Shown: piece by piece, positions 1 through 60,754 of the stretch
Layout: the number at the start of each line of letters is the position of its first letter
Numbering within the stretch: position 1 is the stretch's first letter
IMG/VR virus record: IMGVR_UViG_3300034104_003795
Coordinates: 186,001-250,000 of that record
Direction: 5' to 3' (one strand)
DNA length: 64,000 nucleotides
Notes under the pieces: model-generated
The model's database searches: none
What the model was told of the DNA's origin: nothing
Seen by the model: only the letters and a program-made list of their open reading frames with translations
Program-made: the position numbers and the translations under genes

Positions 1-210
1 TCCTAACGCATCAAATGGTGCCGGTTTAATTGCTTGTGGTATTACCTTTTCAACTTCTTGCGCAATTACTCCAATATCATGTCTATCAATTGGATTAAAC
101 CCTAACGAATCAACCATCTCTTTCCAATCAAAATAAACACCTCTTAATTGCTTCAACATTCCCAATGCATCACTAATTGTAGTAATATTTTCTTTCAATC
201 TTTCATCCGA
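1..210 (-). other. Peptidase S74 / intramolecular chaperone autoprocessing domain (partial)
   Basis: SDERLKENI...LRGVYFDW...IGVIAQEVEKVIPQA matches the characteristic S74 signature of phage tail fibres and tailspikes. Confidence 0.88.
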
Positions 211-20000: not shown

Positions 20001-22278
20001 AATTACTAGGTGTTAATTCATCTAAACTAAATATAATAGTTCCACTATCAGTTCCATTATTCGTAACACCAGTGTTGTATGCACCATCCGTTCCGGTTTG
20101 AATACTTCCAGATTTTATCCAAAACGGATGCCCACTTGCATTTATATTAAAGGTATATGTAACACCTCTTACTAATGTTAATGTTGGATTTGATGCACTT
20201 ATTGCGTTACTAAACACATATGCACTAAATCCATTATTTGTTACATCAAATACGGTGTTTAACGATTGACTTGGAATTGCATAGTTTGAAGATGAAACAA
20301 TCATACTTCCACTAAACTTACTATAAACGTTTACATTAAATCCCTTTACCGGGTCAATAGATGCGGTTGCAGAACCAGAGAAAATTAAATTAACATCTAA
20401 ATTAGAAATAGCTGAACGAGGAATATTAAATAACTTCTCACCACTACCACTAAAGAATGAACCAGATGATAAGAAAACACTACCACTAAAAGTAGAACCA
20501 CTTGCAACTGATTTTACAACGAATCCATCCACATCGGTTACAGATGCAGTTACACTACCACTTGCAATTAAATTTGAAATCAATGCATCGGGTGCTAAAG
20601 CTGTTCTAGGGATGTTAAATAATCTTTCACCACTACCACTAAACGATGAACCAGAAGTTAGTGATATATTACCACTTACAATTAAAGAACCGGTAAATTG
20701 AGAACCACTATCCGGTGATATTACTCTAAATCCTTCATCAGGACTAACAGATGCGGTTACACTACCACTTGCTATACGAAATACTTCTTCAGATAACGCA
20801 GAACGAGGAATATCAAATAACCCTCTACCACTACCACTAAATTGAGATGCCGAAACCGAACCAGTTACTACTAAATAACCCGCTATTGTAGCAGATGTAT
20901 TAACTTCTAATCCCTTATCAGGTGATATTGATGCGGTTGCAGAACCACTTGCAATTCTAGGTGCAACAAGAGATGGTACGTTTGTTAATTTACTACCATC
21001 GCCCACAAAGAAAGATGCGGTTACGGCACCATTGACGTTTACCGAACCACTTATATCAACACTTCCGGTAAATTGTGAACCCCTATCTACAGATTCTACT
21101 CTAAATCCAAAATTAGGTGAAACAGATGCAGTTACACTACCACTTGCAATTCTAAAAGGTGCAAAAGAAAGTGCGGATTCTGGAATATCAAATAGAAATC
21201 TACCAGAACCACTAAAGAATGAACCGGATGCTAATTTTATACTACCAGTAAATTCAGAACCATTTGCTTCCGATTCAACCCTAAATCCAAATACAGGAGA
21301 AACGGATGCCGTTACCGAACCGCTTGCTAATTTTGTAGCTTCGGGTAAATTAAATAGGCCTTTACCATCTCCAGAGAATGAACCAGTAAATGAGCCTGTT
21401 GCAGAAGATGCAGTAAATTGATTTATAGTGGCCGTTAATGAAAATATAGAACCAGATTCTACTATAACGGATCCAGTAGTTAAACGTAAACTACCTGTAA
21501 TTTGCACACCACCTAAAAATGATGCACTTTGTGCGTTTATTATTAAAATATCACCAAGAACCGATGCTGTCACCGAGCCACTTGCTAATATTGCAGATTC
21601 AATTGCAGATTGTACATTTCTTAAATCTCTACCGTCTCCAAAAAATGAGCCCGTAAATGATGAAGATATTGAAGAACCGGTTGCTTCATTAAATCTTAAA
21701 TAATTTCCAATTTCAACCGAACCTGTAAATTCTTGTTTATCACTTAATTCATCACCAAATTTATTTGAACCAGATGAATATATTACAGATGATGAAATTA
21801 TACTAACAACTAATTGTTCAGCATATATTGATTTTGATACATATAAATTTTCTGCAATTGTTGTATCAACATTTATTTGTAATCCAAAATTAGGAGAAAT
21901 TGATGCAGTTGCAGAACCACTAGCTAAACGTATTGTGTCAGGTAAATTAAATAAACCAGCACCATCGCCAAAATAAGAACCAGAGAATGAACCAGTATAA
22001 GAACCCGTAAAACTACCACTTAATGATTCAGCACTACCAGTAAAAGAACCTGTAAATTGTCCCGTTACTCTATCTAAATCTAAACTTCTTACGAATCCTC
22101 TATTACCTTGGTCATCTGAAACTACAATAGCTGGTGAACCAGAAAGTGAAGCACTAAAATTTGGAACACCCAAATTTGGTTCAACTTGAGATAAATCAAT
22201 AAATTGATACCTGTCTTGTGTTACGTTTTTTGGGGATACTACCCTTACCCTACCTGATAATAGATTACTAATTGCCAT
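11089..22278 (-). CDS. Giant virion appendage protein (3729 aa): about 24 SGS-rich repeats, three cupredoxin-like domains, about 1090-aa Gly-X-Y Ser/Thr tract, C-terminal fibre domain
   Basis: ORF track. Repeats xIxSGS(V/A)TAS(V/I)SP..G; three GHP(F/L)W...LYY.CQ.HS.M domains; C-terminal TITWPVNVDWAGGSAPTLT...DILVF typical of phage tail proteins. Confidence 0.85.
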   Translation of the reverse strand: MAISNLLSGRVRVVSPKNVTQDRYQFIDLSQVEPNLGVPNFSASLSGSPAIVVSDDQGNRGFVRSLDLDRVTGQFTGSFTGSAESLSGSFTGSYTGSFSGSYFGDGAGLFNLPDTIRLASGSATASISPNFGLQINVDTTIAENLYVSKSIYAEQLVVSIISSSVIYSSGSNKFGDELSDKQEFTGSVEIGNYLRFNEATGSSISSSFTGSFFGDGRDLRNVQSAIESAILASGSVTASVLGDILIINAQSASFLGGVQITGSLRLTTGSVIVESGSIFSLTATINQFTASSATGSFTGSFSGDGKGLFNLPEATKLASGSVTASVSPVFGFRVESEANGSEFTGSIKLASGSFFSGSGRFLFDIPESALSFAPFRIASGSVTASVSPNFGFRVESVDRGSQFTGSVDISGSVNVNGAVTASFFVGDGSKLTNVPSLVAPRIASGSATASISPDKGLEVNTSATIAGYLVVTGSVSASQFSGSGRGLFDIPRSALSEEVFRIASGSVTASVSPDEGFRVISPDSGSQFTGSLIVSGNISLTSGSSFSGSGERLFNIPRTALAPDALISNLIASGSVTASVTDVDGFVVKSVASGSTFSGSVFLSSGSFFSGSGEKLFNIPRSAISNLDVNLIFSGSATASIDPVKGFNVNVYSKFSGSMIVSSSNYAIPSQSLNTVFDVTNNGFSAYVFSNAISASNPTLTLVRGVTYTFNINASGHPFWIKSGSIQTGTDGAYNTGVTNNGTDSGTIIFSLDELTPSNLYYTCQFHSAMQGAINVVNAIEIPAEITFIGKTNITGSLGVSGSVFLGSGSFFSGSGRGLFDIPQSAFTGDAYRIASGSVTASVSPDYGFRVESLQRGSDITGSVRVSGSLTAERIFSPEFSGSFEGDGSRLRNVPSIEGTRIVSGSVTASVSPVYGFRLEGANRAEFSSSILVSGSVEISSGSSFSGSGERLFNIPRTALAPDALFSEKIVSGSVTASVAPNQGFVVTSIESGSTFYGEVRVITGSSFSGSGKKLFDIPVAALSDLDTSKIFSGSATASISPDKGFLVNTGVTVRDYLIVTGSTDIKSNLVVTGSLKVNQSSLFKSGVSASVFSGSGAGLTDIPFSALSQEIFRIASGSVTASALPDFGFIVESTLLGSQFTGSINISGSVFAHGNIELQSGSSFSGSGRNLFDIPESALSFAPNKIASGSVTASVSPVFGFRVQSADSGSEFTGSVDITGSLLVRGDVTSTSGSYFIGDGRFLNNITLANLAIDSTKIFSGSATASISPNNGFEVNVHSRIDGSFVVSSSARPLPTELIDNTIYVTNDGSSAYVVSNGLISGSNPTLTLVRGVEYTFNVNAVGHPLWIKFINSTGTSNNVSQSITNNGDDSGDIVFTPYSGSPNILYYNCQLHSSMVGQLNIVDFLEIAPEITFIGNTQITGSLNTSGPVSSSMFSGSGKGLFDIPRSALSEEVFRIATGSITASVTPEFGFLVQSVSSGSTFSGSIFMASGSFISSSGRLLFDIPRSALTEDALISAEIKSGSVTASVSPVDGFKVKTPFTSSLVFDNVFNVINNGSGEYVFSGAASGSNPTITLHRNYEYIFNINASGHPFWINETSGTGDTNFYNSWVTNNGEDVGQITFLVSGSAPNTLYYNCQFHSSMAGVINIVDGNPNLIFDTQIGSRFTGSVDISGSLYINEIASGGLFLSSGSSYYGEGTYLRNIPRSALTEDALISTEIKSGSVTASVSPVDGFRVITPFTGGLVGSQFTGSVEVSGSIRATEFLFGDGRFITNVVAAAAPLIASGSATASVQSGNVFIITTAATGSQIGSQFTGSIEVSGSIRATDFLFGDGRFITNVVATAAPLIASGSATASVQSGNNFIVRTAATGSDIGSQFTGSVSISGSLTADDLTARGFVFGDGRFLTNVQAAAAPLIASGSATASVASGDKFIVNASSGSQFTGSVSITGSLTASLFIGDGGGLFNIPPDAIENLELAKINSGSGVAIIDPTKLDVNVPITAARYDGDGSGLFNIPAEALEDLQLDRIISGSVEAVISPNKGLEINTSVRIFSGSLAVSGGIFVTGSDVVLQSGSRYVGDGSGLRNINIANLAFETAILKSGSVFAEISPDLGFRVSTSASIDGDLDVVYDITAHNISASGTIFAPTISGSFLGTYNFQGVGPTASAEYDILRYDEDRGYFVPQPETSLTETVSFSNVSDLTIVHNLGILYPMVQVYATGSEDQIIPGTVKSIDEDTIQIKFAGLTSGHVVIGSGGSLINGTIPGDRVFGEVLSASYARRAEVAVSVQGFDSASLASLSASLGDSSQYVRNNQTSSMAVFSAVSSSYALTASFALNGGGGGTELFIYHTSSLVKSQTAKINFSGSGVDVISSGSDGVLVTINGGAAQTSLTASYILSTGVDGPLGMDSISYSVNALTASFALNSANTDTSSFLNINTNQTINASLTISGSLGVSGSIMLGGIVSASYDEVVTWDPITKKLGYRNVAAAVGSSGTGGSSGSSGSSGLTGTSGTSGSSGSSGSSGSSGSSGIDGSSGSSGSSGSSGSSGTTGTSGSSGSSGSSGSSGSSGSSGTSGSSGSSGTSGSSGTSGTSGTSGSDGSSGSSGTSGSSGSSGTSGSSGTSGTSGSSGSSGTSGSSGTSGSSGSGGSSGSSGSTGSAGTSGTSGTSGSSGSSGSSGTSGSSGTSGSSGTSGTSGSSGTSASSGSGGTAGTSGSSGTSGTSGTSGTSGSSGSGGTSGSSGTSASSGTGGTAGSSGTSGTSGSSGSAGSAGTSGSSGTSGSSGSDGSGGSSGTTGTSGSSGTTGSAGSSGTSGSSGTSGEDGSSGTSGSSGSSGSAGTSGTNGSAGTSGSSGSSGSSGSSGSAGSSGSSGSSGSSGTTGSDGTSGSSGSSGTSGTDGTSGSSGSSGSSGSSGTTGSSGSSGSSGSSGSSGADGTSGTSGSTGTAGSSGSSGTDGSFGTSGSSGSSGTSATSGSSGSSGSSGSSGSSGSSGTSGSSGLDGTYFGSSGTSGSSGSSGTSATSGTSGSSGTSGVDGTFFGSSGSSGSTGTSGTDGTSGETGTSGTSGESGTSGTSGLDGTFFGSSGTTGTSGSSGSSGSSGISGTDGTSGTSGKDGTFFGSSGTSGQDGTSGTSGSSGSSGSSGQDGTSGTSGLDGTFFGSHGTSGTSGESGSAGSSGSSGTSGESGTSGTGGSSGSSGTSAEGSSGSSGTSGESGTSGTSGSDGTSGSSGTSGESGTSGKDGTFFGSSGTSGSSGTSGSSGSTGSSGSAGTGGTSGVSGTSGSSGKDGTYFGSSGTSGSSGESGTSGSSGISGTDGSAGSSGSSGTSGKDGTFFGSSGTSGESGTAGTSGQSGTSGTSGSSGTSGSSGFDGTYFGSSGTSGISGTSGTSGESGTSGVSGTTGTSGSSGKDGTLFGSSGTSGVSGTSGVSGSSGTSGLGTNGTSGTSGFDGTYFGSSGTSGKDGTNATGEAGTSGTSGTTPPGFTSGTSGETGTSGTSGTTPPGFTSGTSGSSGESGTAGTSGTTPPGFTSGTSGTSGISGTAGTSGTTPPGFTSGTSGQSGTSGTSAPGFTSGTSGTSGFPLSGNTEDGILTYNAVAFGANVESNLTFNGSTLTVTGNVISTTSIAANTFRETYSDQGTGGSVTLDLSTGNNFRRQFNGNASVAFSNAPASNAFGFTLVTVNAGAYTITWPVNVDWAGGSAPTLTSVGTDILVFYTYDGGTTYYGFVSGKNFS
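11550..14815 (-). repeat. Coding (G-S-S/G-T-S)n tract of about 1090 codons with DGT(F/Y)FG and TTPPGF punctuation
   Basis: Direct reading of the 3729-aa translation and the 9-bp periodic DNA. Confidence 0.93.
15900..21960 (-). repeat. About 24 copies of a 60-70-aa repeat (F.G.G.GL.DIP.SAL....IASGSVTASVSP..GF.V.S...GS.FTGS)
   Basis: Counted by eye on the SGS(V/A)TAS core in the translation; some copies are near-identical at DNA level (e.g. 16700-16740 vs 16890-16930). Confidence 0.85.
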
Positions 22279-22297
22279 TCGTACTTTCCAGCTTTAT

Positions 22298-22328
22298 TAT
22301 AAATATCAAAAAAATCACCTATAAATAT
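22298..22328 (-). promoter_or_regulatory. Two tandem late-promoter-type motifs upstream of the 3729-aa gene
   Basis: TATAAATAT on + at 22298-22306 and 22320-22328. Confidence 0.62.
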
Positions 22329-22346
22329 TAATAGATAATATTATCG

Positions 22347-23264
22347 TTATTCATTAGCAGATTCAAGTAGAGATAGAACTACTGATAGCTTAGTTGAGCC
22401 GGAAACTATAAATCCATAACCTTCTTCTAATACTAATTTACCAGAAACTACCGGTGAAAGTGAATCTGCTACTGGTATTGTCACATTTGTTACCAATTCA
22501 ACAGGTGGTTGTTCGGTAAATACTGGATTTTCAATGGTTGCTTTAATAACGTCCACTAAACTATTAACCAAATATATAGATGCCGAAATTCCCGCTTCAG
22601 TTCCATTTGTAAATCCACTTAATATAGATTGAGTAACTGCATTTTGAAATAATAATGGAGAATCAGCCGAACCGGTTGTTGATTGGTTTTTTATAATTTG
22701 ATTAGATAATACTTTTAAATAATCTAAAGCAAATATAGATGCAGAATATTCAGTTGTTGCAATCGCAGATACTCCATTTTTATCAAAATATGCTTTTGCT
22801 GCTTTATTTGTTCTGATTGTTGTGTTATTAACTATATCATATTTTATCGCATCTACATCATCTAAAGTATTTTGTTCAAAGTATGATGATATAAAAGTAA
22901 ATGGTGTTTCTGATAAACTATTTTGATTAGAAGTATATGCCGCTATTTCCTTTCTTAAAAATTGTCTATTAGCATTTAATAACAAAGATGCACTGGCAAA
23001 ACTACCACTATATTCTGATAATGAAACAGAAGCACTAATAAACGCACTACCACTATATATGTCAACAAATTGTGGAACAGGCAATTCTCTATTAGATGTT
23101 ACTAATATAGTAACGGGTTGTGTTACTAAACTATTGTTTGTAATTTGACAAGATAGTACAATAGATGATACCCCAAGAGGAGTTGCATATATTTCATCTT
23201 GTTCTCCGGTCAATCCCGATACTACTGACTGAAACCGATTTAAGGGTACAAAAACTTCTGCCAT
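22347..23264 (-). CDS. Virion structural protein (305 aa): small beta-rich domain split by one helical (globin-like) repeat
   Basis: The N- and C-terminal parts align by eye with the 110-aa protein at 9063..9395. The middle (NANRQFLRKEIAAY...DAIKYDI...LDYLKVLSNQII) resembles the repeats of the 4184-aa protein. Confidence 0.72.
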   Translation of the reverse strand: MAEVFVPLNRFQSVVSGLTGEQDEIYATPLGVSSIVLSCQITNNSLVTQPVTILVTSNRELPVPQFVDIYSGSAFISASVSLSEYSGSFASASLLLNANRQFLRKEIAAYTSNQNSLSETPFTFISSYFEQNTLDDVDAIKYDIVNNTTIRTNKAAKAYFDKNGVSAIATTEYSASIFALDYLKVLSNQIIKNQSTTGSADSPLLFQNAVTQSILSGFTNGTEAGISASIYLVNSLVDVIKATIENPVFTEQPPVELVTNVTIPVADSLSPVVSGKLVLEEGYGFIVSGSTKLSVVLSLLESANE

Positions 23265-23288
23265 TTCTTTTTATTTTTTATTTTCTTT

Positions 23289-26200
23289 TTATATTTGTAG
23301 TGCCAATGAGAACGGAGTTACTAATGAGAATAGAGATTTACTAAATGTTCTACCCACAAGAGTACCAGTTGCTTGATTAATACTTAGGCCAGTACCAATT
23401 CTAAAGTCACCATCTTGGTTACCGGAAGTGAAGAATATTCTACCACCACCCAATTCGGTAATTTCAAACGCCGGATTTGCCACACCACTACCACCCTGAT
23501 TTGGAGGAAGTGCTTTAAACGTCACACCACTACCATTATAAGAGTAGTCAATACCAGTTGCCACAATCAATGAACCAAATGCTTCTAATGGTGCACCCGC
23601 TGCTATAAACTCTGCTCTTGTTCTTAAATATCTATTAGTTTCAAGAGTTTCTAATAACTGGTCTCTAGTCACTGCAATTGCACTTCCATATTGACCATCG
23701 TAGTATGAAGATGCTGCTCTAATTCCTCTCTCATTTCCACCATATAATAAGTCAGTAACACACGCATCTACAATAAATCCAGTATCACGTGAACAACTAG
23801 CCTCATTATATACTAAATATGGAAATGCTCCATTTGTATATCCAATTGCTCGTTGTTTTAATTCTTCCTTACCAAGTTTTAATCTTTCTGCCGCCTGTCT
23901 TCTTTTAGTTGATGGTGCTAAATAACTTAATAAAGTATTTGCAACTATCTTTTCAGAAAGTCCTCTTGCGAAGTTAATACCATCTACCGTTTGTTTCTTT
24001 TGTCCATTATTATCACCATAACTATCCACTATTGCTACTGATGGGAATTTATAATAGTAAGAACCCGCTTCAATACTTCTTTCATTACCACCATACACTA
24101 AGTCAGTTCTAATTGCATCTATAATAAACCCTAAATCTCTAGAACAACTTACTTCGTTATATTTCAAATTACTCCAAGAAGAACTTAAGAATGTTATAGT
24201 TTCCTTTTGTATCAATTCTTTATTATCTGTCAACAATTTAGCGGTTGTTAGTAAAGATGCCGAAGGTACTAAATATGTTGGATTGGTTATTACCTTTTTA
24301 GATACCTTTCCAGCGTATCTGATACCAGTAAGCGTTGGGTCTAATTGGTTTTTAGTTGATGGAACACCTGCGTTAATAGCGTTAGAAGGATATAAGTAAT
24401 AATACTGTCCTGCTATCAAACTTCTTTCTTGTCCACCATAAAGTACATCAGTTGCCGCTGCATCTATTAGGTATCCAACATCTCTCTTACAAGTAGTTTC
24501 ATTGTAATATACACTACTCCAAGATGAAGATACATATTTAATTGTTTCTTCTGCTACAAATGCTTTATTCTTTCTTAATAGGTCAAATGATGCAGATGCC
24601 TCTAATGATGCAGTTACAAATACTATGTTTTGCGCAACTTTTTGTGCCAATCTACTTGCGTAGTTTATACCATCAACTGTTTGTCCTAATTGACCAAGTC
24701 CATCACCATCTCCTTCAACAATTGCTAAAGATGGATATAGATAATAGAACTCTCCATTCAATACAGTTCTCTCATTACCACCATATAATAAATCGGTAGT
24801 AACACCATCTAATATATAGCCAACATCTCTCTTACATTTATCTTTATCATACTCAAATGTACTCCAGCTAGCAGTTAAGTAAGCTAGGGTTTCATTTTGT
24901 ATAAACTCTCTGTTATTTCTTAACAAATTAACCGATGCTGATATTATTTGTGATGCAGTTACATAAGTTAATGATGTAGCTACATTTTTAGAAGTTTGTC
25001 CTGCGTAATTAACACCAGTTAATGTTGGTTGTAATTGTGAACCTTGTGCTTGAGATGGATATAAGTAATAGAACACCCCAGCATTTGTACTTCTTTCATT
25101 ACCACCATATAATAAATCGGTAGAAACTGCATCTATGATATGTCCAACATCTCTCTTACAAGTTACCTCATCATAAGATGCTGTGCTCCAAGAAGAAGAT
25201 ATGTACGCGATAGTTTCGTTTTGAATAAACTCTCTATTGTTTCGTATCAATTCGTATGATGCTGATACATTTGCCGATGCGGTTACATAAGTTACATTTT
25301 GTACTATATTTTGTGCCAAACGGCTAGCATAGTTAATACCATCCAATGTTTGGTTTAGTTGTGCACCTTGTGCTTGAGATGGATATAAGTAATAGAACAC
25401 TCCATTGAATATTGATGCGGAATTTGCATTAAATAATAAGTCTTCGGCAGAACCACTCAATATAAACCCTAAATCACGTCTACATTTACTCTCGTCATAA
25501 GATGCGGTTGACCAAGATGAACTCAAATATGCAATACTTTCCGATACTATGAATCCAATATTTGCTTTTAATAAATTATATGCGTATATTACATTAGTAT
25601 CAACGGATGCAGTTGTATATGGAATTAAAGTTGGTAATGAACCAGTACCATTTCTTACTATATCTGTTACAATAGAAATAGATGCCGATATTGCATTAGC
25701 TTCGGTAATAGTTCCAAATAACGATGATGTTATAAATTGTTGAGCGTTGGTTACTTTAATATTTGCTAACGTATTAGGTATAACAGAAGGTGTCCCTATC
25801 AATATACTACTAATAGATGCCGTTGTTATTCTAGCTGCGTACTTAATTGCCTCTACCGTTTCTACAACTTGCGAACCAGACCCATTAGCTTGAGATGGGA
25901 ATTCATAATAGTAATCTGCATTCTTTCTACTTCTTTCATTTCCACCATAAAGTAAATCAGTTGCCACACCATCGATAATATATCCTAAATCTCTATAACA
26001 TTTACTTTCACTATAATCTAAATTAGGGTATTTAACATTTACAAATGCGATACTTTCACTTTGTATGAATCGTTTGTTAGCCTTTATTAAATCATAAGTA
26101 TATTGAACTTCTAATGATGATGTAAATATCTCTTTATTAACAACTACATTCATAGCTGTTCCTTTTGCGTATCTTACACCAGTTAATGTTGGTTCTAATT

Positions 26201-29200
26201 GTGAATCGGTAGCTTGTGATGGGAAATCATAATAATATCTTCCAGCTACAACACTTCTTTCGTTTCCGCCATATAAAAGGTCAGTTGCTACTGCATCTAT
26301 AATGTATCCAATATCTCTTTTACAAGTTATTTCATTATAATCAAAATCACCCCAAGAAGAAGATAGATACGCAATTGATTCACTTTGTATAAATCCTTTG
26401 TTAGCTCTTAATGAATTCCAAGATGCTGATGTTGGTTGGTTAATTGATGCCGATATGTGTGTAAACGGAATGTTCAACACCACCTTCTCTGCCAATCCAC
26501 TTGCGTATTTAATTGCAGTGATTGTTTGGTCTAATTGTGAACCAGTTGCTTGTGATGGGAAATCAAAATAGAACTTACCATTAAACAATGATGCCGAATT
26601 ACCACCATATAAAAGGTCAAATGCAGAACCACTAAGGATTCCAGTCAAATCTCTTTCACATTTACTTTGTGTATATTCAAACCCACTCCAAGATGAACTC
26701 ATATACGCAATAGTTTCATCAACTATAAATTTAGAGTTACTTACTAATAAGTTATATGCTGAATTTATCTTTGCATTTGTATTTGCTATCGGGAATGTTG
26801 ATGGTCTATATGCAATTGAGCTCGTACCATTATTTAATAACACATCGATTACTAATGATAATGATGCTGATATCAATTTACCTTGCAATCTTCCTGCCGC
26901 ACTTCCACTTATTAATTGTGGAGTATCAGTTACTTTAATACTTGCAGATGTATTTGATACAATTGTTGGCAGAACTGATGTTCCATTTTCAATTACATTT
27001 AGTATCAAATCAAATCCACTTGCAATCTTATTAGTATCAAACGATGATGCGGATATGTCTTGTCTTATAGGATTTGCATTTGTTACTTTTAATGATGAAG
27101 ATGTACTTGCTACTAATGTAGGTAATACACTTACTCCATTTTTAAGAACGTCTACAACAGTACCATAAGAAGAACTTACATTTGTAATTTGAATTGCCAA
27201 ATCATATGAACCAGTTCCAATTATTTGTTCTTGTGAACTTATATGTAATAAAGTTGGTGTAGATAATTCAAATCCATAATTATAGTTTCTTGCCAATGAA
27301 TCCGGTACAAATGCAACACCATTTTCAATAATATCAGCCACATGCTTAAATGATGATGTGATAATATCCAATTCAGCTCCACTTGCCGATATTGATGATG
27401 AGTATTGAGTAGTATTAGTTATTTTGATTAAACCATTGCCATTTTCAACGATAGTTGGTATTGTAGATAATCCATTTTCAATAATATTAGTAACTAACGC
27501 AAATGATGAACTAATTTGATTTACTTCGTTTATACTTGCACTCAACGGTGTTGTATATTGTGTTGTATCAGTTACTTTAATATTTCCATCGGTATTTGTT
27601 GTTAATGCCGGTGAATTTAATTTAATATTTTGTGCTATTGCTTTAGCTAATACTTTAGCGTATTCAACACCTTCCACAGTTTCTCTAACTTGCGTACTCT
27701 TTGTTGCTAAAGATGGATATAAATAATAATATTGTCCAGCTATAACACTTCTTTGATTTCCACCGTAGAAAGTATCAGTTATAACTGCATCTAAAATATA
27801 TCCTACATCACGTCTACATTTTTCTCTTAAATAAACTAAATTAGGGAAGAATGCATCTATGTATTGTACAGTTTCGTTTTGTATAAATCTTTTGTTCTGT
27901 CTTAATAAATTAACCGATGATGTTACAAATCCAGTTGGTGCTATCAATACTTTATTTGATATTACATTTTGTGCAGTACCAGCTACATATTGTATTCCAT
28001 CAAGTGTAGGTCCTTTTTGAGTTTCGGTAGTTGGTGAAATAGAACCAGTCAGAATTGCTGCAGATGGGTATAGATAATAGTACTCACCTGCTTTAGAACT
28101 TCTTTCGTTTCCACCATATAAAAGGTCAGTTCTTACTGCATCTATAATATATCCAATATCTCTCTTACAAGTAGTTTCGTTATAAGAGAATCCATCATCA
28201 CCACTCCAAGACGAAGATAAGTAAGCGATTGATTCACTTTGTATAAACTTCTTATTATCCGTTAATAAATTAAATCCAGTTAATTCAGATGTTGTTGGAG
28301 ATTGTAATAATATATTTGCTACAATCTTTTCAGTAATTCCTTTAGCGTATTTAATACCATCTAAAGTTTGATTCAATTGTCCACCGGTATCACCATCGTT
28401 ACCTACGGTTGCCAATGAAGGATATAAGTAATAATACTCTCCTGCCTCAGCCACTCTTTCGTTTCCACCGTAAAGAATATCAGTTGCTACTGCGTCTAAT
28501 ATATAACCAATATCTCTCTTACAAGTAGTTTGGTTATAAGGGAATGTACTCCAAGAAGAAGATAGATATGCAATAGTTTCATCTTGTATAAATGATTTAT
28601 TATTGAATATCAATTCGTATGCTGAAAGATTTGAATTAGATGCTGATGCAAATGTTGAATTCTTTAATATCTTATCAGTTAAACCTTTCGCATGTTTGAT
28701 TCCACTTAATGTTGCCCCTAATTGAGATGTTGTTGCTTGTGATGGATATTCATAATAGAATACACCGGCATTTATACTTCTCTGATTACCGCCATAAACT
28801 ATATCGGTTGTTACCGCGTCTAAAATATGGCCCACATCTCTCTTACAAGTTAATTCATTGTAAGATGTTGTACTCCAACTAGCAGATACATAACTTATAA
28901 CTTCGTTTTGTATAAATTCTCTATTATTATAAATTAATTCTTTTGCTTGTAATTTATTTTGAGATACTTTAGTAAATGTATTTCCTCTTAAAATTTTGAA
29001 TGCAATATCTCTAGCATATTCAATACCAGTAACAGTCTCTTGTATTTGTGAACCAGTTGCTTCAGATGGGTATTTATAATAGAATACTCCAGCATTTATT
29101 GTTCTTTCATTTCCACCATATAATAAGTCAGTAGAAACTGCATCTATAATATGTACTATATCTCTTTTACAAGTTGATTCAACGTATTGATGTGTACTCC

Positions 29201-32200
29201 AAGATGAACTTATGTAAGGTATTACTTCATTCTTAATAAGTTCTTTATTATTAACTAATAAACTATACGCATCTTTAATTTGCGCCGATTGAGTTACAAA
29301 TAAAGTATTTAATACTATTTTTTGTGCTAAACGGCTTGCGTAGTTGATACCATCCAATGTTTGGTTTAATTGTGCACCCTGCGCTTGAGATGGGAATTGA
29401 TAATAATAAACACCATTGAATACCGATGCTGAATTTGCATTAAATAATAAGTCTTCAGCTGAACCACTCAATATAAATCCTAAGTCACGTTTACATTTAC
29501 TTTCATCGTAAGATGCAGTTGACCAAGAAGAACTTAAATATGCAATACTTTCCGATACTATGAAATCTAAATTATTTTTTAGAATAGTATAAGCCGCTAT
29601 TACATTTGAAGATGATATTGATGATGTATATAAAGTTACAATCGGTAATGAACCCGTTCCATTTGCTATTATATTTGTTACAATAGAAATTGATGCAGAT
29701 ATTGCATTAGCTTGCGTTTGTGTTGCCGGTGTTCCTCCTAAATATTGAGTAGCATCGGTTACTTTAATATTATTTACATTTGAAGTAATAGTAGGTAATG
29801 AACCAGTACCATTTTCTAATATGTTTATAATTGTATCAAAACTTGCAGATATATTTCTTGCCAACGAAGATGATATAATTACCGAAGATGTATATTGATT
29901 TGTATCTGTTATTTTTACTAACCCGTCAACATTTTTTATCAACGTAGGTAAAGAACCAGTTCCATTTTCAACAATATCCAAAACAATATTAAAATTATTA
30001 TTTGAAGATGTAAGATATGTGGATGATATTGATGCGGTTGTTATGTAACTATTTGTAGTAGTTCGTTTAATTAAAGAATTTACATTTGTTACAATAGTTG
30101 GAATTGAACCTGTGCCATTTTCTACAATATCAAGTACGATATCAAATCCAGTAGTTACTTTTGCCTTTTCAGAATTAGAAGGAGTTATTGATGATGTTAT
30201 TTGTGTACCACCAATAAAGTTTATACCTCTATTTGTATTTTTAACAATAGTTGTTGGTATTGAACCAGTTCCGTTTGATACGATATTAAGTATATTACCA
30301 AATGAAGCTGATACAATAGATTTATCGTTTGTTACTACTGATATAGATGATGTAATTTGTTGAGCGTTAGTTGCTTTAATTCCAGCAATAGTATTTAACA
30401 CCACATTAGGTGCTGTATTACTTCCACTTTCAATTACTTTAGATACAATATCAAAACCATCTTCTATTTCTTTTCCACCAATTGCTACTAATTTTGCTAA
30501 ACCTTTTGTGAAGTTTAGTGAATCAATTGTTTCTTCGGATTGAACACCGGTAGCTTGAGATGGATATAAATAATAGAATCGTCCAGCAGTTATACTTCTT
30601 TCATTACCACCATAAACCAAATCAGTAATTACAGCATCTACAATAAATCCAGCATCTCTATAACATTTACTTTCAATATAATCTAAATTAGGATATGTTT
30701 CGTTTGCGTAATCAACGGTATTTTGTTGTAAAAATGCTCTATTAGTTTTTAATAAACTTGCCGCATTTAATACTGATGTAGGTGGTGCCGATAAAACAAC
30801 ATTCGTAATTATATTTTGTACTAATTGATTTGCGTAATTTACTCCAGTTATAGTTGTGTCTAATTGTTGTGTTGCCGAAGGTACTCCACCTACAATTGCT
30901 GCTGATGGGTATCTATAATAGTATTCTCCTGCAAATCTAGTTCTTTCGTTACCACCATATACCAAGTCAGTTCTTACAGCATCTAAAATATATTTAGTAT
31001 CTCTTAAACATTTAGCCTGATTATATTCTGCGGTACTCCAAGATGAAGATACATAAGCTACAACTTCGTTTGCAATTAAGTTTTTATTTCTTAATATTAA
31101 ATTACTTGCATTTACTTTATTTCCATCCGCTGAAACAAATACCGAACCAGTAACAATCTTTTGTATCATTCTACCTGCATAGTTGATACCATCTAACGTT
31201 GGAAGTAATTGAGAACCCGTTGCTTCGGATGGATATAAATAATAGAATATACCAGCATTTCTACTTCTTTCGTTACCACCATAAACCAAGTCAGTTCTGA
31301 TTGCATCTATTATGTACCCAACATCTCTTTTACAAGTTAATTCATTATACGGATGTTCACTCCAAGATGAACTCAAATACGCAATTGTTTCATCCTGTAT
31401 GAATGTTTTATTGTTTACTAACAATGATGCCGCATTTAAAGAGTTAGCACTTACCGTAGTGAATTCTATATTTTGAATTACTTTTTGTGCTAAACGGCTT
31501 GCGTAGTTGATACCATCCAATGTTTGTTGTAGTTGAGCTCCTTGTGCTTGCGATGGATATTCCCAATAAAATAATCCGTTAAATATAGATGCTGAATTTG
31601 CGTTCCATATTAAATCTTCCGCAGAACCACTCAATATAAATCCTAAATCACGTTTACATTTAGTTTCATCATATTCAAACCCAGCCCAAGAAGAACTTAA
31701 ATATGCAATAGTTTCATTTTGAATAAATGGAATATTGTTTTTAAGTATCTCATATACAGCTACACTATTAGATGATGTTATTCTATTTGTATATGGTTGG
31801 AATGTAGGTGCTGAAAACTCTCCACCTTCAATTATCTTTGTTACTATTGATATTGATGCTGATATAAAGTTTACATCGTTTACACTTGCCGAATAAGATG
31901 CTGAAATGTATTGTGGTGTATTTGTTACTTTAATACTTGCACTTACATTTGATATAAGAGTAGGTACAAAAGATAACCCACCTTCTAATATATCGGTGAT
32001 TACTTTTATTGAAGAACTTAATTGTGTACTTTCAGTAGATGTTCCATAATAACCAGAACCAGTTATGTATTGTGGTGTATTGGTTACTTTTATATTTGAG
32101 TTTAGATTTGAAACTAATGTACCTAATGAACCAGTACCATTTGTTATTATAGTTGCTACATATGCAATTGATTCGGATATTGAATTTCCAACAGAACCAC

Positions 32201-35200
32201 TAACTGCCAATGAAGCAGTTATTTGTGGTGTACCAGTTACGGCAATTGCATTTGCTTGAGACGATGTGAATAAAGGCTCTGCTGCTAATCCACCACCAAT
32301 AATCGTATTTACAATATCAAAACTCTTACCAATTTTATCCACTTCATCTGGTGTTGTATAAGATGAAGTTATTTGAGAACCGGTAGTTACATTTATTGGA
32401 TTGTATTTATTCCAATTTAATCCAGTATTCTGTGCCAATAATGATTTAATTGAACCCAATCCTCTTGCCACAATTCCTTCTATAATTGAAAATGAATTAC
32501 CAACCGAAGTTTGTTCAATAGTACCACCACCAAAAGATGATGTTATATTTGTTAGTCCGGATAATCTAAAGTTTCTCTCATCATTATAAACAATACGAGG
32601 TGTATCTAATATTTGATTTTGAACAATAGTATCTCCAATAATTTTTGCATATCGAATACCCGCAATAGTTGATGATTTTTGTGTTCTCGTAGCCTGTGAT
32701 GGGAAATCGTAATAATATCTACCCGCAATCACACCTCTTTCAAGACCACCATAAAGTAAATCAGTTGCCACATTATCAACAATATAACCAACATCTCTCC
32801 TACAAGTTGCTTGATTATATTTTAAATTTGGAAATGCAACATTAATAAATTGAATTGTTTCGTTTTGAATTAATTCTTTATTATTTATCAGATTATTATA
32901 TGCAGATAAAGTTGATGCATTAGGTGATGTAAATGTTTTTCCTTTTAATAGATTATCAACTAATCCACTAGCATATCTTATACCATCCACCGTTTGTCCT
33001 AATTGCCCAACACCATCTCCATCTCCTTGTACAATTGCCAATGAAGGATATAAATAATAGTATTCACCGGCAGTTATACCTCTTTCATTACCACCATATT
33101 TTACATCAGTTGCTACCGCATCTAATATATAACCAGTATCACGTCTACACTTTACTTCGTTGTAATAAAAATTAGACCAAGATGATGATAGATAAGTTAT
33201 AACTTCATTTTGTATAAATGTTCTATTATCCCTGATTGTATCCCAAACATCCACTACTTCATTGTTTGGTTCTACATATACCCTACCTCTAATCAAATTT
33301 AATGCAACACCCGCTGCGTGCTTAACTGCAGTTAATGTTGGTCCTAATTGTGTTGTAGTTGCTTCGGATGGAAATTGATAATAGAATAAACCATTTCTAA
33401 TACTTTCTTCATTACCCCCAAAAAGTAGGTCTTTTGCTACACCATCAATAATATATCCAACATCTCTTTTACAAGTTTCTTCTGGATAGTAAAATTCACT
33501 CCAAGAAGAAGATACAAATTGAATAACTTCATCTTTAATAAATTCTTTATTATTTACTAATATTTCGTATGCAGTTATGATATCAATAGCAGTTTTAGCT
33601 ATTGAACCACTTTGTATTGTGGCTGGATATGTTAATGTATTTCTAATTAATTCAAATGGGGTTGTAGATGAATTTACTATGTTAATTTCACCACCCATAG
33701 AACTTCTATTCTGTGATACATAATATAATTTATTTGGTGCATTATATGGTACTGTAAAGGTTATTGTACCTCTACTATCACCATTATTAACCATGCCAAT
33801 ATTATAATCAAATTTCTCACTAATACCTTCTATTTGTTGTGTTCTAATCCAAAATGGATATTCAATTCCACCAAATGTTTCTATTGCATCTACATTGAAT
33901 TTGTAGGTTTCTCCTCTAAATAAAGTTAATGTAGGATTACTACCAATTCCTTCAAAATCAAATGAAGAACTATTTGTATTTGTTATTACAAATGATTTTT
34001 GGTGATTCTCTGGTATTGGTAAAATATTACTACCAGTACCATTTGCTAAAATGTTATAAACAATACTGAAACTGGCACTTACCGAATTTATTGTTGCTAA
34101 TGATGATGTCACACCAAGCATTACTTGTTCGGTATTACCAGCTTTAATACTAGCACTTGTATTTGAGATAAACGTTGGTTTAGCAGAAAGGCCTGATTTA
34201 ATAATATTAATTATATTGTTAAACGATGCACTTACCGATGAAGTATAGTTTGTTGCTACACTCCCTATTGGTTGTATAACATCATTACCTATTTGTCTAC
34301 TTGCACTTGTGTTTGGTCTAAAATTAAACGAACCCGTACCATTTGCCAATATACTCAAAATAGCGGCATAAGATGCACTTATTTGAACTAAATCCGCATT
34401 TGATGCCGATATAGATGATGTTATTTGCTCTGCTCCTAAAATATTATAAGGAGAATCAAATCCATATCCTTTTATAGAACTCTTTGCCAATAAAGTTGGA
34501 AAGTTTGATACCCCACTATCAACAATTGCACTTATTAATTTATAATCAGCCGATATTTCTTCCGCCGCAGCAGTTGATAATGAAGTTCCAGCAGATACTC
34601 TACTTTGTGTATATAATGCCGGAGAAGTTAAACGAATACCTTCATCGGTATTTAATTTTGTTATTGTAGGTAATCCGTTTTCCAATCCTTTATTTAATAC
34701 ATCTACAACACAACTCCAAGTTCCTCTAACAGAATCTCTAGCAGCAATATTACCACCACTACCAGAAATAAAACGAGAACCGGATGCATACATACCATAC
34801 AAACCAAACGAAATGTTTGAGTTGTTTAGGGTAGCATGTCCACCATTATTTACTCTAATAGAATAATATGAGAAGTTATTAAAGAAAGATACCAACTGAA
34901 TGAAACCTCTACCATTTACCAAACATCCTACACCATTTGGAGAAATCTGCGTATAAGCATCCAATACCATTGAAGCTAGTGGAGAATCTGGATCAATTAC
35001 ATCACCATTAACATAAAGACCTCCGCCGCCTGGTGGAATATCCTCATAAAGTTCGGTGAATGAATTTTCTTGGTTTGAAATTTGTGAACAGTTCTGAACA
35101 TATGGAGAAGTTGTAATAAATGCTCCAGGTTGAAACGCCACCGCAAATCCTTTTTCAGGATTTATTTGGTCTGGAAATAATCTCAAACCACCCATCGTTA

Positions 35201-35843
35201 CCTCTGCAATATAACATCCAGAGTTTACATAGAAAAGGTCTTCTGTGGGGTTTTTCGCGTTAATCTTGGTGATACGCAAACCGGCACCCCAAATGGTTGT
35301 GTTTTTAGGAAGAATCACAGGATTATCCTCTAAATACGTTCCAGCCTGTACCTTGATTACATATCCATTGAATATTGAACCAGTATCAAATCCATATCTA
35401 CCATCATACCCCGGAGATGCCAATGAAGCCGCTCTTTTAATTGTACGAAGTGGATATTGAATACTTCTACCATCGTTTGTATCATCACCATCGGTAGAAG
35501 ATACATAAAGAGTTGGAACGTTAGCACCAAAATCTTTTGCAAGAATACCAGCATATCGTTGAGTATCAACTGCCAATAAAGTGTTCGATGCGGTAACCGC
35601 AAGAACAGTTTCAGGTGCCGCAACTTTTAATTGTCCATCAATTGTTAATGAGCCAGTTAAAAAAACCGAACCAGTTATTTCACTTTTAGAACCCGTTTCT
35701 GTTCCTAAAAAGAAACTTTTAGATACGAATAATGAGCCAGATATAATGGCATCGTTTCCAACATTAACGTTTTGTCTAATGTTAAGTGAACTACTTATAT
35801 CCTGTTGTTCTTCAATTTGTTTACGTGGTATCAGTCTTGCCAT
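23289..35843 (-). CDS. Giant virion structural protein (4184 aa): pectin-lyase-like beta-helix split by 22 CxRD globin-like repeats and 22 amphipathic-helix repeats
   Basis: ORF track. N-terminal LYVSSTDGDDTNDG...IKRAA...IKVQAGTYLEDNP...GAGLR...SPYVQNCS; C-terminal GGRIFFTSGNQDGDFRIGTGLSINQATGTLVGRTFSKSLF as in T4-like aquatic phage structural proteins. Confidence 0.85.
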   Translation of the reverse strand: MARLIPRKQIEEQQDISSSLNIRQNVNVGNDAIISGSLFVSKSFFLGTETGSKSEITGSVFLTGSLTIDGQLKVAAPETVLAVTASNTLLAVDTQRYAGILAKDFGANVPTLYVSSTDGDDTNDGRSIQYPLRTIKRAASLASPGYDGRYGFDTGSIFNGYVIKVQAGTYLEDNPVILPKNTTIWGAGLRITKINAKNPTEDLFYVNSGCYIAEVTMGGLRLFPDQINPEKGFAVAFQPGAFITTSPYVQNCSQISNQENSFTELYEDIPPGGGGLYVNGDVIDPDSPLASMVLDAYTQISPNGVGCLVNGRGFIQLVSFFNNFSYYSIRVNNGGHATLNNSNISFGLYGMYASGSRFISGSGGNIAARDSVRGTWSCVVDVLNKGLENGLPTITKLNTDEGIRLTSPALYTQSRVSAGTSLSTAAAEEISADYKLISAIVDSGVSNFPTLLAKSSIKGYGFDSPYNILGAEQITSSISASNADLVQISASYAAILSILANGTGSFNFRPNTSASRQIGNDVIQPIGSVATNYTSSVSASFNNIINIIKSGLSAKPTFISNTSASIKAGNTEQVMLGVTSSLATINSVSASFSIVYNILANGTGSNILPIPENHQKSFVITNTNSSSFDFEGIGSNPTLTLFRGETYKFNVDAIETFGGIEYPFWIRTQQIEGISEKFDYNIGMVNNGDSRGTITFTVPYNAPNKLYYVSQNRSSMGGEINIVNSSTTPFELIRNTLTYPATIQSGSIAKTAIDIITAYEILVNNKEFIKDEVIQFVSSSWSEFYYPEETCKRDVGYIIDGVAKDLLFGGNEESIRNGLFYYQFPSEATTTQLGPTLTAVKHAAGVALNLIRGRVYVEPNNEVVDVWDTIRDNRTFIQNEVITYLSSSWSNFYYNEVKCRRDTGYILDAVATDVKYGGNERGITAGEYYYLYPSLAIVQGDGDGVGQLGQTVDGIRYASGLVDNLLKGKTFTSPNASTLSAYNNLINNKELIQNETIQFINVAFPNLKYNQATCRRDVGYIVDNVATDLLYGGLERGVIAGRYYYDFPSQATRTQKSSTIAGIRYAKIIGDTIVQNQILDTPRIVYNDERNFRLSGLTNITSSFGGGTIEQTSVGNSFSIIEGIVARGLGSIKSLLAQNTGLNWNKYNPINVTTGSQITSSYTTPDEVDKIGKSFDIVNTIIGGGLAAEPLFTSSQANAIAVTGTPQITASLAVSGSVGNSISESIAYVATIITNGTGSLGTLVSNLNSNIKVTNTPQYITGSGYYGTSTESTQLSSSIKVITDILEGGLSFVPTLISNVSASIKVTNTPQYISASYSASVNDVNFISASISIVTKIIEGGEFSAPTFQPYTNRITSSNSVAVYEILKNNIPFIQNETIAYLSSSWAGFEYDETKCKRDLGFILSGSAEDLIWNANSASIFNGLFYWEYPSQAQGAQLQQTLDGINYASRLAQKVIQNIEFTTVSANSLNAASLLVNNKTFIQDETIAYLSSSWSEHPYNELTCKRDVGYIIDAIRTDLVYGGNERSRNAGIFYYLYPSEATGSQLLPTLDGINYAGRMIQKIVTGSVFVSADGNKVNASNLILRNKNLIANEVVAYVSSSWSTAEYNQAKCLRDTKYILDAVRTDLVYGGNERTRFAGEYYYRYPSAAIVGGVPSATQQLDTTITGVNYANQLVQNIITNVVLSAPPTSVLNAASLLKTNRAFLQQNTVDYANETYPNLDYIESKCYRDAGFIVDAVITDLVYGGNERSITAGRFYYLYPSQATGVQSEETIDSLNFTKGLAKLVAIGGKEIEDGFDIVSKVIESGSNTAPNVVLNTIAGIKATNAQQITSSISVVTNDKSIVSASFGNILNIVSNGTGSIPTTIVKNTNRGINFIGGTQITSSITPSNSEKAKVTTGFDIVLDIVENGTGSIPTIVTNVNSLIKRTTTNSYITTASISSTYLTSSNNNFNIVLDIVENGTGSLPTLIKNVDGLVKITDTNQYTSSVIISSSLARNISASFDTIINILENGTGSLPTITSNVNNIKVTDATQYLGGTPATQTQANAISASISIVTNIIANGTGSLPIVTLYTSSISSSNVIAAYTILKNNLDFIVSESIAYLSSSWSTASYDESKCKRDLGFILSGSAEDLLFNANSASVFNGVYYYQFPSQAQGAQLNQTLDGINYASRLAQKIVLNTLFVTQSAQIKDAYSLLVNNKELIKNEVIPYISSSWSTHQYVESTCKRDIVHIIDAVSTDLLYGGNERTINAGVFYYKYPSEATGSQIQETVTGIEYARDIAFKILRGNTFTKVSQNKLQAKELIYNNREFIQNEVISYVSASWSTTSYNELTCKRDVGHILDAVTTDIVYGGNQRSINAGVFYYEYPSQATTSQLGATLSGIKHAKGLTDKILKNSTFASASNSNLSAYELIFNNKSFIQDETIAYLSSSWSTFPYNQTTCKRDIGYILDAVATDILYGGNERVAEAGEYYYLYPSLATVGNDGDTGGQLNQTLDGIKYAKGITEKIVANILLQSPTTSELTGFNLLTDNKKFIQSESIAYLSSSWSGDDGFSYNETTCKRDIGYIIDAVRTDLLYGGNERSSKAGEYYYLYPSAAILTGSISPTTETQKGPTLDGIQYVAGTAQNVISNKVLIAPTGFVTSSVNLLRQNKRFIQNETVQYIDAFFPNLVYLREKCRRDVGYILDAVITDTFYGGNQRSVIAGQYYYLYPSLATKSTQVRETVEGVEYAKVLAKAIAQNIKLNSPALTTNTDGNIKVTDTTQYTTPLSASINEVNQISSSFALVTNIIENGLSTIPTIVENGNGLIKITNTTQYSSSISASGAELDIITSSFKHVADIIENGVAFVPDSLARNYNYGFELSTPTLLHISSQEQIIGTGSYDLAIQITNVSSSYGTVVDVLKNGVSVLPTLVASTSSSLKVTNANPIRQDISASSFDTNKIASGFDLILNVIENGTSVLPTIVSNTSASIKVTDTPQLISGSAAGRLQGKLISASLSLVIDVLLNNGTSSIAYRPSTFPIANTNAKINSAYNLLVSNSKFIVDETIAYMSSSWSGFEYTQSKCERDLTGILSGSAFDLLYGGNSASLFNGKFYFDFPSQATGSQLDQTITAIKYASGLAEKVVLNIPFTHISASINQPTSASWNSLRANKGFIQSESIAYLSSSWGDFDYNEITCKRDIGYIIDAVATDLLYGGNERSVVAGRYYYDFPSQATDSQLEPTLTGVRYAKGTAMNVVVNKEIFTSSLEVQYTYDLIKANKRFIQSESIAFVNVKYPNLDYSESKCYRDLGYIIDGVATDLLYGGNERSRKNADYYYEFPSQANGSGSQVVETVEAIKYAARITTASISSILIGTPSVIPNTLANIKVTNAQQFITSSLFGTITEANAISASISIVTDIVRNGTGSLPTLIPYTTASVDTNVIYAYNLLKANIGFIVSESIAYLSSSWSTASYDESKCRRDLGFILSGSAEDLLFNANSASIFNGVFYYLYPSQAQGAQLNQTLDGINYASRLAQNIVQNVTYVTASANVSASYELIRNNREFIQNETIAYISSSWSTASYDEVTCKRDVGHIIDAVSTDLLYGGNERSTNAGVFYYLYPSQAQGSQLQPTLTGVNYAGQTSKNVATSLTYVTASQIISASVNLLRNNREFIQNETLAYLTASWSTFEYDKDKCKRDVGYILDGVTTDLLYGGNERTVLNGEFYYLYPSLAIVEGDGDGLGQLGQTVDGINYASRLAQKVAQNIVFVTASLEASASFDLLRKNKAFVAEETIKYVSSSWSSVYYNETTCKRDVGYLIDAAATDVLYGGQERSLIAGQYYYLYPSNAINAGVPSTKNQLDPTLTGIRYAGKVSKKVITNPTYLVPSASLLTTAKLLTDNKELIQKETITFLSSSWSNLKYNEVSCSRDLGFIIDAIRTDLVYGGNERSIEAGSYYYKFPSVAIVDSYGDNNGQKKQTVDGINFARGLSEKIVANTLLSYLAPSTKRRQAAERLKLGKEELKQRAIGYTNGAFPYLVYNEASCSRDTGFIVDACVTDLLYGGNERGIRAASSYYDGQYGSAIAVTRDQLLETLETNRYLRTRAEFIAAGAPLEAFGSLIVATGIDYSYNGSGVTFKALPPNQGGSGVANPAFEITELGGGRIFFTSGNQDGDFRIGTGLSINQATGTLVGRTFSKSLFSLVTPFSLALQI
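23600..33590 (-). repeat. 22 copies (5 blocks: 3,4,6,3,6) of a 90-100-aa helical repeat N(K/R).FI..E...Y....W...Y....C.RD.GYI.DAV..DL.YGGN.RS..AG.YYY.YPS.A....Q...T..GI.YA
   Basis: Counted on the CxRD motif in the translation. Confidence 0.9.
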
Positions 35844-48476: not shown

Positions 48477-48480
48477 AACA

Positions 48481-48512
48481 CAAATATACAAAAAAAGTTT
48501 GGAATTACCAAA
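48481..48512 (-). promoter_or_regulatory. Bacteroidota-type primary-sigma promoter
   Basis: Coding strand TTTG-N20-TATATTTG-TGTT-ATG matches the established -33 TTTG / -7 TAnnTTTG consensus with 19-21-nt spacing. Confidence 0.75.
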
Positions 48513-60310: not shown

Positions 60311-60314
60311 ATCA

Positions 60315-60323
60315 TATAAATAT
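60315..60323 (-). promoter_or_regulatory. Late-promoter-type motif
   Basis: TATAAATAT on +, 4 nt from the proposed ATG. Confidence 0.55.
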
Positions 60324-60348
60324 TGGAGATTATTGTTTTGCAAAATTA

Positions 60349-60711
60349 TTAAGCCAATCCACCTTGTTGTTCAGCTAGTTGCTTTCTAGTTGGTGCACCT
60401 GGTTGATATTGAATAACACCTTCTTTAAGGTTAATTCTCATTTGTGGATATTTTTCATCCAATTCATCAATTGTTTGCTTGATTTCTTCAGTTATTAGTT
60501 GAAACTCAACTTCTGATTTTGCAAGAACTTCATCAAGTTTAACAAGTTCAGCTTGTATTTCTTTTTTTCTAAGATATATTTGACCGAAATCGTTTATAAA
60601 GATATTTTGTTTTTGATTAAGTTGTTCTAACTTTTCTTTAACAGAATCATCTATTTTTACAGATTCAATCTCAATACTTTGTTTTTGTGGAATGTTATCT
60701 AATTCACTCAT
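60349..60711 (-). CDS. Hypothetical coiled-coil protein (120 aa)
   Basis: ORF track; heptad-rich. Confidence 0.72.
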   Translation of the reverse strand: MSELDNIPQKQSIEIESVKIDDSVKEKLEQLNQKQNIFINDFGQIYLRKKEIQAELVKLDEVLAKSEVEFQLITEEIKQTIDELDEKYPQMRINLKEGVIQYQPGAPTRKQLAEQQGGLA

Positions 60712-60737
60712 AAGTTTGTTTTTTATTGTTTTGTATA

Positions 60738-60746
60738 TATAAGTAT
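60738..60746 (-). promoter_or_regulatory. Late-motif variant (ATACTTATA on the coding strand)
   Basis: TATAAGTAT on +. Confidence 0.55.
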
Positions 60747-60754
60747 ATTCTTTT

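Follow-up and report, generated by a model that had tools for sequence, protein, structure and literature searches.

Phycobiliproteins are known as the antenna proteins of cyanobacteria and algae, with BBAG relatives in some bacteria. Their usual bilin attachment motif is CXRD, and two of these relatives, BBAG-1 and BBAG-3, carry CXRD and attach bilins by themselves (PMC10151467). Bilin-related genes also occur in phages, including an S-type lyase gene, cpcV, in some cyanophages (PMC10665884). The role of phage cpeT has been called unresolved (PMC3037559), as have, in similar terms, the roles of phage ho1, pebS, pcyA, cpeT and cpcV taken together (PMC3037559, PMC1079782, PMC10665884). Adsorption of P-HM1, P-HM2, S-PM2, and similar cyanomyoviruses depends on light for reasons that are likewise unexplained; in the dark, neither P-HM1 nor P-HM2 adsorbs, and one proposed cause is light-sensitive tail fibres (PMC6628666). 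Here we analyse 64,000 nucleotides of the IMG/VR virus record IMGVR_UViG_3300034104_003795 (positions 186,001 to 250,000 of the record; hereafter the window, to which all coordinates refer unless stated otherwise). A giant gene in the window, which comes from an uncultured T4-related phage, encodes a fibre-type protein with 22 repeats that are very probably homologous to the phycobiliprotein core, as judged from sequence profiles and predicted structure. Literature searches for a link between phycobiliproteins or globins and phage fibres found no earlier report.

The giant gene is a single intact open reading frame (ORF) on the minus strand (23289..35843), which starts with ATG and encodes 4184 residues. 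It contains exactly 22 C-x-R-D motifs, located between residues 791 and 4017, and these motifs account for 22 of its 27 cysteines. The repeat units are 108–119 residues long, with a motif spacing of 108–118 residues within blocks. For convenience, the units are numbered R1 to R22 along the protein. Motif positions and unit alignment place them in five blocks of 3, 4, 6, 3, and 6 units, all on the minus strand: R1–R3 (32586..33611), R4–R7 (30447..31796), R8–R13 (27600..29633), R14–R16 (25782..26798), and R17–R22 (23577..25622). The first-pass annotation of this DNA had reported 22 repeats, each with C-x-R-D, at 23600-33590. Both the count, which holds for 22 of 22 units in one intact ORF, and the extent, measured as 23577-33611, agree with that report.

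The 22 aligned units share 31–50% pairwise identity, and residues Y42, C47, R49, D50, D61, Y77, S82, Q88, and T92 are invariant in all of them. The consensus originally proposed for the motif helix describes most units, but the first unit of each of blocks 2–5 carries a variant helix, LGFILSGSAEDL in R4, R8, and R17 and LTGILSGSAFDL in R14. In R4, R8, and R17, the variant helix is followed by N-A-N in place of G-G-N. Because the units have diverged, Tandem Repeats Finder detects only one repeat at the DNA level, a 324-nt tandem of 2.0 copies with 76% matches (24767-25404). It covers R18–R19 and suggests a recent unit duplication.

As a sequence family, the repeats are real and not a product of chance, because a profile of the 22 units matches 1292 protein clusters at E ≤ 1e-3, 522 of them at E ≤ 1e-30, among 1.84 billion representatives. 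The best 150 of the cluster proteins listed are mostly longer than 1000 residues and hold up to 36 units per protein. In 1083 full-length units from 150 related giant proteins, counted without regard to relatedness, the Cys is conserved in 96%, the Arg in 96%, Asp50 in 99%, Asp61 in 100%, and Tyr77 in 98%. The mean column identity is just 22% in a diverse subset of units. Among cultured phages, 210 of 50,697 records match, all of them from phages of Synechococcus or Prochlorococcus or from other marine cyanophages, and the matching proteins bear annotations such as short tail fibre, gp7, tail, or structural protein. This is in line with the likeness to structural proteins of aquatic T4-like phages that the first-pass annotation had mentioned. 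In P-HM1, the 4446-residue baseplate protein gp7 has two units, one reading C-A-R-D and the other C-I-R-D, and a YapH-like protein (18175-29205 of locus L019) has three units of the family, in which C-x-D-D replaces C-x-R-D. A query with a single block against genome contigs found no relative, and a search of the ESM Atlas returned only low-scoring viral hypothetical clusters.

Independent sequence comparisons point from the repeats, weakly but exclusively, to phycobiliproteins. The Pfam family PF00502 (Phycobilisome) is matched by 22 of 141 diverse units, with a best E of 1e-5, and every other Pfam family is matched by at most two. The best repeat of the window itself scores 14.1 bits against PF00502, and the best, though weak, NCBIfam match is to C-phycocyanin alpha. 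When a profile of the diverse units is searched against all PDB sequences, 34 of the 35 matches are phycobiliproteins (best E 9.7e-4), and the best alignment covers residues 39–104 of CpcA, that is, helices B and E. In hhalign, the comparison with a CpcA/CpcB alignment reaches 94.5% probability over 59 columns, compared with 0.4% for a reversed control and at most 1.1% for column-shuffled controls. In both the PDB profile search and hhalign, C-x-R-D, which is present in 22 of 22 repeats, aligns with Cys84, Arg86, and Asp87 at the start of helix E. The column of Arg93, an alpha-beta pairing residue invariant in the phycobiliprotein alignment, is Asp in 79% of repeats. The flanking helices had previously been aligned by eye; alignments of hidden Markov models back helix B, but helix G receives low-confidence support only.

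We predict the structure of R9 (residues 2175–2292, in block 3) with AlphaFold2, using 140 diverse homologous units as input and no templates. The model has five helices, with a predicted local distance difference test score (pLDDT) of 91.1 and a predicted template modelling score (pTM) of 0.81, and shows a globin-type all-alpha core. In a Foldseek search against 350,542 PDB chains, 49 of the top 50 matches are phycobiliproteins. The query-normalised template modelling (TM) score to most beta subunits is 0.72–0.78, with root-mean-square deviations of 2.8–4.6 Å. The target-normalised TM score is ~0.5, because the unit lacks both the X-Y hairpin and helix H. For cyanophage tail and structural proteins, independent models in BFVD give query-normalised TM scores of 0.7–0.84 to the R9 model. 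The phycobiliprotein-like globin fold proposed in the first-pass annotation is thus supported by Pfam, NCBIfam, PDB profile, and hhalign signals as well as by the model. The repeat is predicted to be a shortened phycobiliprotein-type globin fold, with helices A/B, E, F, and G.

The conserved residues around the Cys vary together. In 37 of the 1083 units, there is no Cys at position 47 or 92. Asp50 is lost in 38% of these thiol-less units versus 0.1% of the rest, Tyr77 in 43% versus 0.5%, Arg49 in 54% versus 1.7%, and Thr92 in 41% versus 6% (odds ratios 636, 159, 67, and 10, respectively, computed ignoring the relatedness of units). Weaker coupling to the thiol is observed at Gln/Glu88 and Tyr42. 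In contrast, thiol-less units retain Asp61, Asn21, Asn67, Ile54, and other conserved residues like the remaining units, and Arg is lost in only 2% of equally diverged Cys-bearing units. Because Cys, Arg, and Asp are lost together while the fold residues remain, this triad appears dispensable for the fold and appears to form one site with Tyr77 and Thr92.

The thiol also seems able to move within this site. Cys92 is present in ten units, nine of which have Ser47 with Arg and Asp retained; one has both Cys47 and Cys92 and looks like an intermediate. For each of five of the nine swapped units, the closest relative is a canonical unit and not another swapped one, and the other four are one related group, indicating that the swap from position 47 to position 92 arose at least five times. 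In a permissive hhalign alignment, Thr92 falls opposite Tyr129 of CpcA, in a low-confidence stretch; Tyr129 of CpcA makes a hydrogen bond with the alpha-84 bilin (PMC12692400). In addition, 22 of the 37 thiol-less units have an aromatic residue (Phe, Trp, or Tyr) at position 47, which fits a cavity at this place. Judged from sequence, the residues that align with the pigment-attachment triad are under clear selection, and the coupled residues indicate a putative ligand site that is centred on the thiol and lies where the chromophore canonically sits.

We propose the following explanation. The fibre protein would consist of an N-terminal beta-helix and five all-alpha domain blocks separated by runs of a ~51-residue repeat. 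Each alpha domain would be homologous to the core of a phycocyanin or phycoerythrin subunit, with K-C-x-R-D at the start of helix E, and Cys47, Arg49, Asp50, Tyr77, and Thr92 would form one ligand site. The thiol would hold the ligand, most likely a linear tetrapyrrole that attaches with no need of a dedicated lyase, like the bilins of the BBAG globins. This would make the fibre a multi-chromophore array, and a role of such an array in light sensing for adsorption, in photoprotection, or in something else is speculation. That the repeats bind a ligand of some kind is rather probable. A bilin is a plausible candidate, given a thiol site that is conserved, separable, and relocatable, but we name it tentatively. 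The whole chain, from the predicted fold to a bilin ligand, is possible, and we put it forward as a proposal short of an even chance.

Several observations weigh against this proposal. The match of the whole giant protein to PF00502 (E 8.8e-4, 19.7 bits) lies below the gathering cut-off of 22.2 bits. The hhalign signal comes mostly from the K-C-x-R-D-x-G-Y helix alone, because a control shuffled in 10-column blocks still reaches up to 87% probability, with a score of 37.8 compared with 45.1 for the native profile. The Foldseek E-values of the R9 model are weak (at least 0.14), as expected for a small helical domain. The co-loss odds ratios carry the disregard of relatedness mentioned above, and a single nucleotide change can turn a Cys codon into one for Phe, Trp, or Tyr, which makes the cavity argument less strong. 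No Ho1, PebS, or CpeT homolog is found, with the P-HM1 proteins as queries, in the window, in ~23 kb to its right, or in ~29 kb to its left, nor in ~2 Mb flanking relatives. The host may be a heterotroph, since a Flavobacterium phage is among the cultured phages most closely related in capsid and terminase: the capsid and terminase are 52% and 57% identical, respectively, to those of Flavobacterium phage immuto, and 52% and 55% identical to those of Microcystis phage Mel-JY01. Finally, the literature yielded no account of colour or fluorescence in cyanophage particles, though no search targeted that question.

The search for bilin genes covers ~116 kb of the 273,997-nt contig, that is, the window and ~52 kb of flanks. 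Pfam scans of 27 ORFs of the window, including the giant ORF, also show no bilin synthesis or lyase gene, consistent with the first-pass annotation, which had seen none in the window. That annotation had further suggested searching the rest of the genome; in the part of the contig searched beyond the window, ~52 kb, there is none either. P-HM1 encodes ho1, pebS, and cpeT. In that phage, cpeT lies between baseplate hub gp5 genes and YadA-domain/fiber genes (P-HM1 1-45500), pebS adjoins gp32, gp53, and gp48, and ho1 is close to psbA. T-type lyases act at Cys153/155, and S-type lyases act at Cys82/84. Action of a phage CpeT at the repeat Cys was considered and is unlikely, because T-type lyases use another site.

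The domain could instead have been co-opted purely for structure, as a rigid spacer bead with nothing bound, in which Cys, Arg, and Asp would contribute to stability or to disulfides that form between chains after lysis. The repeats form long arrays interleaved with other spacer repeats, as is common in fibres, and the ~116 kb searched show no bilin gene. A single Cys per repeat would allow symmetric disulfides between chains, and the shift to position 92 would preserve that symmetry. However, the residues that define the fold persist in units without Cys, Arg, and Asp50, so folding does not require the triad. Phe or Trp in place of Cys suits a cavity more than it does a packed core or the interface of a disulfide, and the loss of Arg and Asp together with the thiol is not predicted by a disulfide role. 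The unit statistics argue for a functional thiol site over pure co-option, and we regard such co-option as unlikely.

Alternatively, the same pocket could hold something other than a bilin, such as a metal ion, a sugar or other host-surface ligand, or a cross-link of the Cys-Tyr type. Polar residues abound in the coupled site (Asp50, Arg49, Tyr77, and Thr92, with Gln/Glu88 and Tyr42 coupled more weakly), the protein is a fibre facing the host surface with a beta-helix resembling those of carbohydrate enzymes, and no bilin pathway lies nearby. Against this, the sole homologous precedent for C-x-R-D at this place is bilin ligation (PMC10151467), and the site lacks the conserved His or second Cys of a typical metal site. 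We consider a non-bilin ligand improbable to much the same degree as co-option. Heme binding is rejected as well, as no His is conserved in the 1083 repeats. Convergence or artefact, that is, an unrelated four- or five-helix bundle that happens to carry K-C-x-R-D-x-G-Y and whose AlphaFold2 model drifts to a known fold, would agree with the concentration of the sequence signal in one helix and with the marginal Pfam, PDB profile, and Foldseek E-values, but is very improbable, because four independent libraries give only phycobiliproteins, the alignment reaches helix B, the model is confident without templates, and nearly all of the top 50 among 350,542 PDB chains are phycobiliproteins.

Should the repeats bind bilins as proposed, virions would carry covalently bound bilins on phycobiliprotein-like arrays in fibres and baseplates, and thus a virion-borne photoreceptor or antenna; from sequence and models, we hold this broader claim doubtful. 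If true, it could explain the light-dependent adsorption of cyanomyoviruses, among them P-HM1 with its two C-x-R-D repeats in gp7, and it could give a purpose to phage ho1, pebS, pcyA, cpeT, and cpcV. Two long-standing cyanophage puzzles, the need for light in adsorption and the carriage of bilin genes that hosts barely use, would become testable. If nothing is bound, the repeats still represent a clear recruitment of a host-type fold as a building block of fibres.

The remainder of the giant protein supports its assignment to the virion. The 4184-residue ORF matches the profiles of PHROG 4527 (short tail fiber; E 1.7e-189) and PHROG 5342 (tail fiber; E 5.9e-174). Its N-terminal domain (residues 110–355; 34779..35516, minus strand) is predicted by AlphaFold2, with pLDDT above 90, to be a right-handed parallel beta-helix. 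The Foldseek neighbours of this domain are the tail fibre of Agrobacterium phage 7-7-1 (E 7.8e-5), pectin methylesterases, polysaccharide lyases, and tailspikes, and 121 of 150 homologs match it in blastp. A linker region follows (residues 440–744; 33612..34526, minus strand), in which the motif scan and translation show at least one clear copy of a second, ~51-residue repeat. This repeat, typically with I-V-x-x-I-x-N-G-T-G-S-L-P-T followed by I-K-V-T-N-T-x-Q-Y, fills the four spacers between the blocks (minus strand, from the motif scan): spacer 1 (31797..32585), spacer 2 with five copies (29634..30446), spacer 3 (26799..27599), and spacer 4 with one copy (25623..25781). The separators are ~265 residues long, except for one of 53 residues. 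The Pfam scan of the giant ORF gives no family match for the ~51-residue repeats. The protein ends in a conserved tail (residues 4090–4184; 23292..23576, minus strand), which matches the C-terminus of PHROG 3442 and to the end of which homologs align.

The giant gene comes after homologs of T4 gp13 and gp15 and is followed by the gene for a 305-residue protein, two giant ORFs, and sheath, tube, and baseplate genes. The homolog annotations and this position between the gp13/gp15 neck genes and the sheath/tube genes suggest that the ORF encodes a virion protein of the fibre or tailspike class; the earlier placement in the virion agrees with the PHROG matches, the beta-helix, and the locus. The 305-residue protein (22347..23264, minus strand) has one degenerate unit of the repeat family (hmmsearch domain E 1e-13), which lacks Cys, Arg, and Asp50 and keeps Asp61. 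Its orthologs occupy the same position in two relatives (L001 and L010).

Other fibre-type ORFs of the window, all on the minus strand unless noted, include one of 3069 residues that extends 54 codons beyond the window start (1-9045) and one of 3729 residues with collagen-like tail-fibre matches (11089-22278). A third such ORF, of 1386 residues with collagen-like matches, lies at 39495-43655, and an ORF of 2479 residues lies past the right edge of the window. Within the 3729-residue ORF, the G+C content at 12000-16000 is 0.42–0.48, compared with ~0.33 elsewhere. Long spurious plus-strand ORFs overlap this region and the ORF at 6803-8980; together with the raised G+C content, they point to low-complexity coding repeats. 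A cluster of sugar-nucleotide and glycosyltransferase genes at 57395-63957 (minus strand) contains a PfkB-type kinase, two cytidylyltransferase-like proteins, a GT9 heptosyltransferase-like protein (weak match), and a methyltransferase with a weak GT25 match. Just beyond the window, there are also a GT1/methyltransferase fusion and a radical SAM/SPASM protein. The cluster might glycosylate fibres or alter the host surface. A 444-residue protein at 47157-48491 (minus strand) has an N6/N4 DNA methylase domain and, at its C-terminus, a weak match to sigma-70 region 4. The window contains no tRNA.

Compared with phycobiliprotein subunits (C-phycocyanin, phycoerythrin, and allophycocyanin; PF00502), the phage repeats share the predicted core fold, the K-C-x-R-D-x-G-Y helix E, and the alignment of helix B. 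However, the repeats are 108–119 residues long, whereas the subunits are 160–177 residues long and possess the X-Y hairpin and helix H, and Arg93 of the subunits is replaced by Asp in the repeats. Phycobiliproteins form an alpha-beta antenna ring, whereas the phage domains are tandem repeats in a giant fibre protein and their chromophore is putative. In the ApcE core-membrane linker and in phytochromes, the attaching Cys has shifted to a different structural element and the same pocket is used. The Ser47/Cys92 swaps parallel this relocation in a different protein context.

BBAG-1 and BBAG-3 resemble the repeats in being non-antenna relatives of phycobiliproteins with CXRD (PMC10151467), which the repeats carry in 22 of 22 units, and their lyase-free bilin attachment is, by analogy, the route proposed for the phage repeats. 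The BBAGs are single-domain cellular proteins encoded beside heme oxygenase and bilin reductase genes (PMC10151467); no such neighbours (heme oxygenase, ferredoxin-dependent bilin reductase) are found in the window, its ~52 kb of flanks, or the ~2 Mb around relatives. Also close are the giant genes of marine T4-like cyanophages (S-RSM4, S-CAM1, S-WAM2, S-PM2, and P-HM1 gp7), whose products have the same repeat family and belong to the same PHROG families. These proteins are at most 36% identical to the protein of the window, whose phage belongs to another T4-related lineage than the marine cyanophages, and the copy number differs, with 22 units in the window ORF versus two in P-HM1 gp7. Such shortened tandem relatives in phage fibre and baseplate proteins, spread over the 1292 clusters, would extend the phycobiliprotein superfamily into virus particles.

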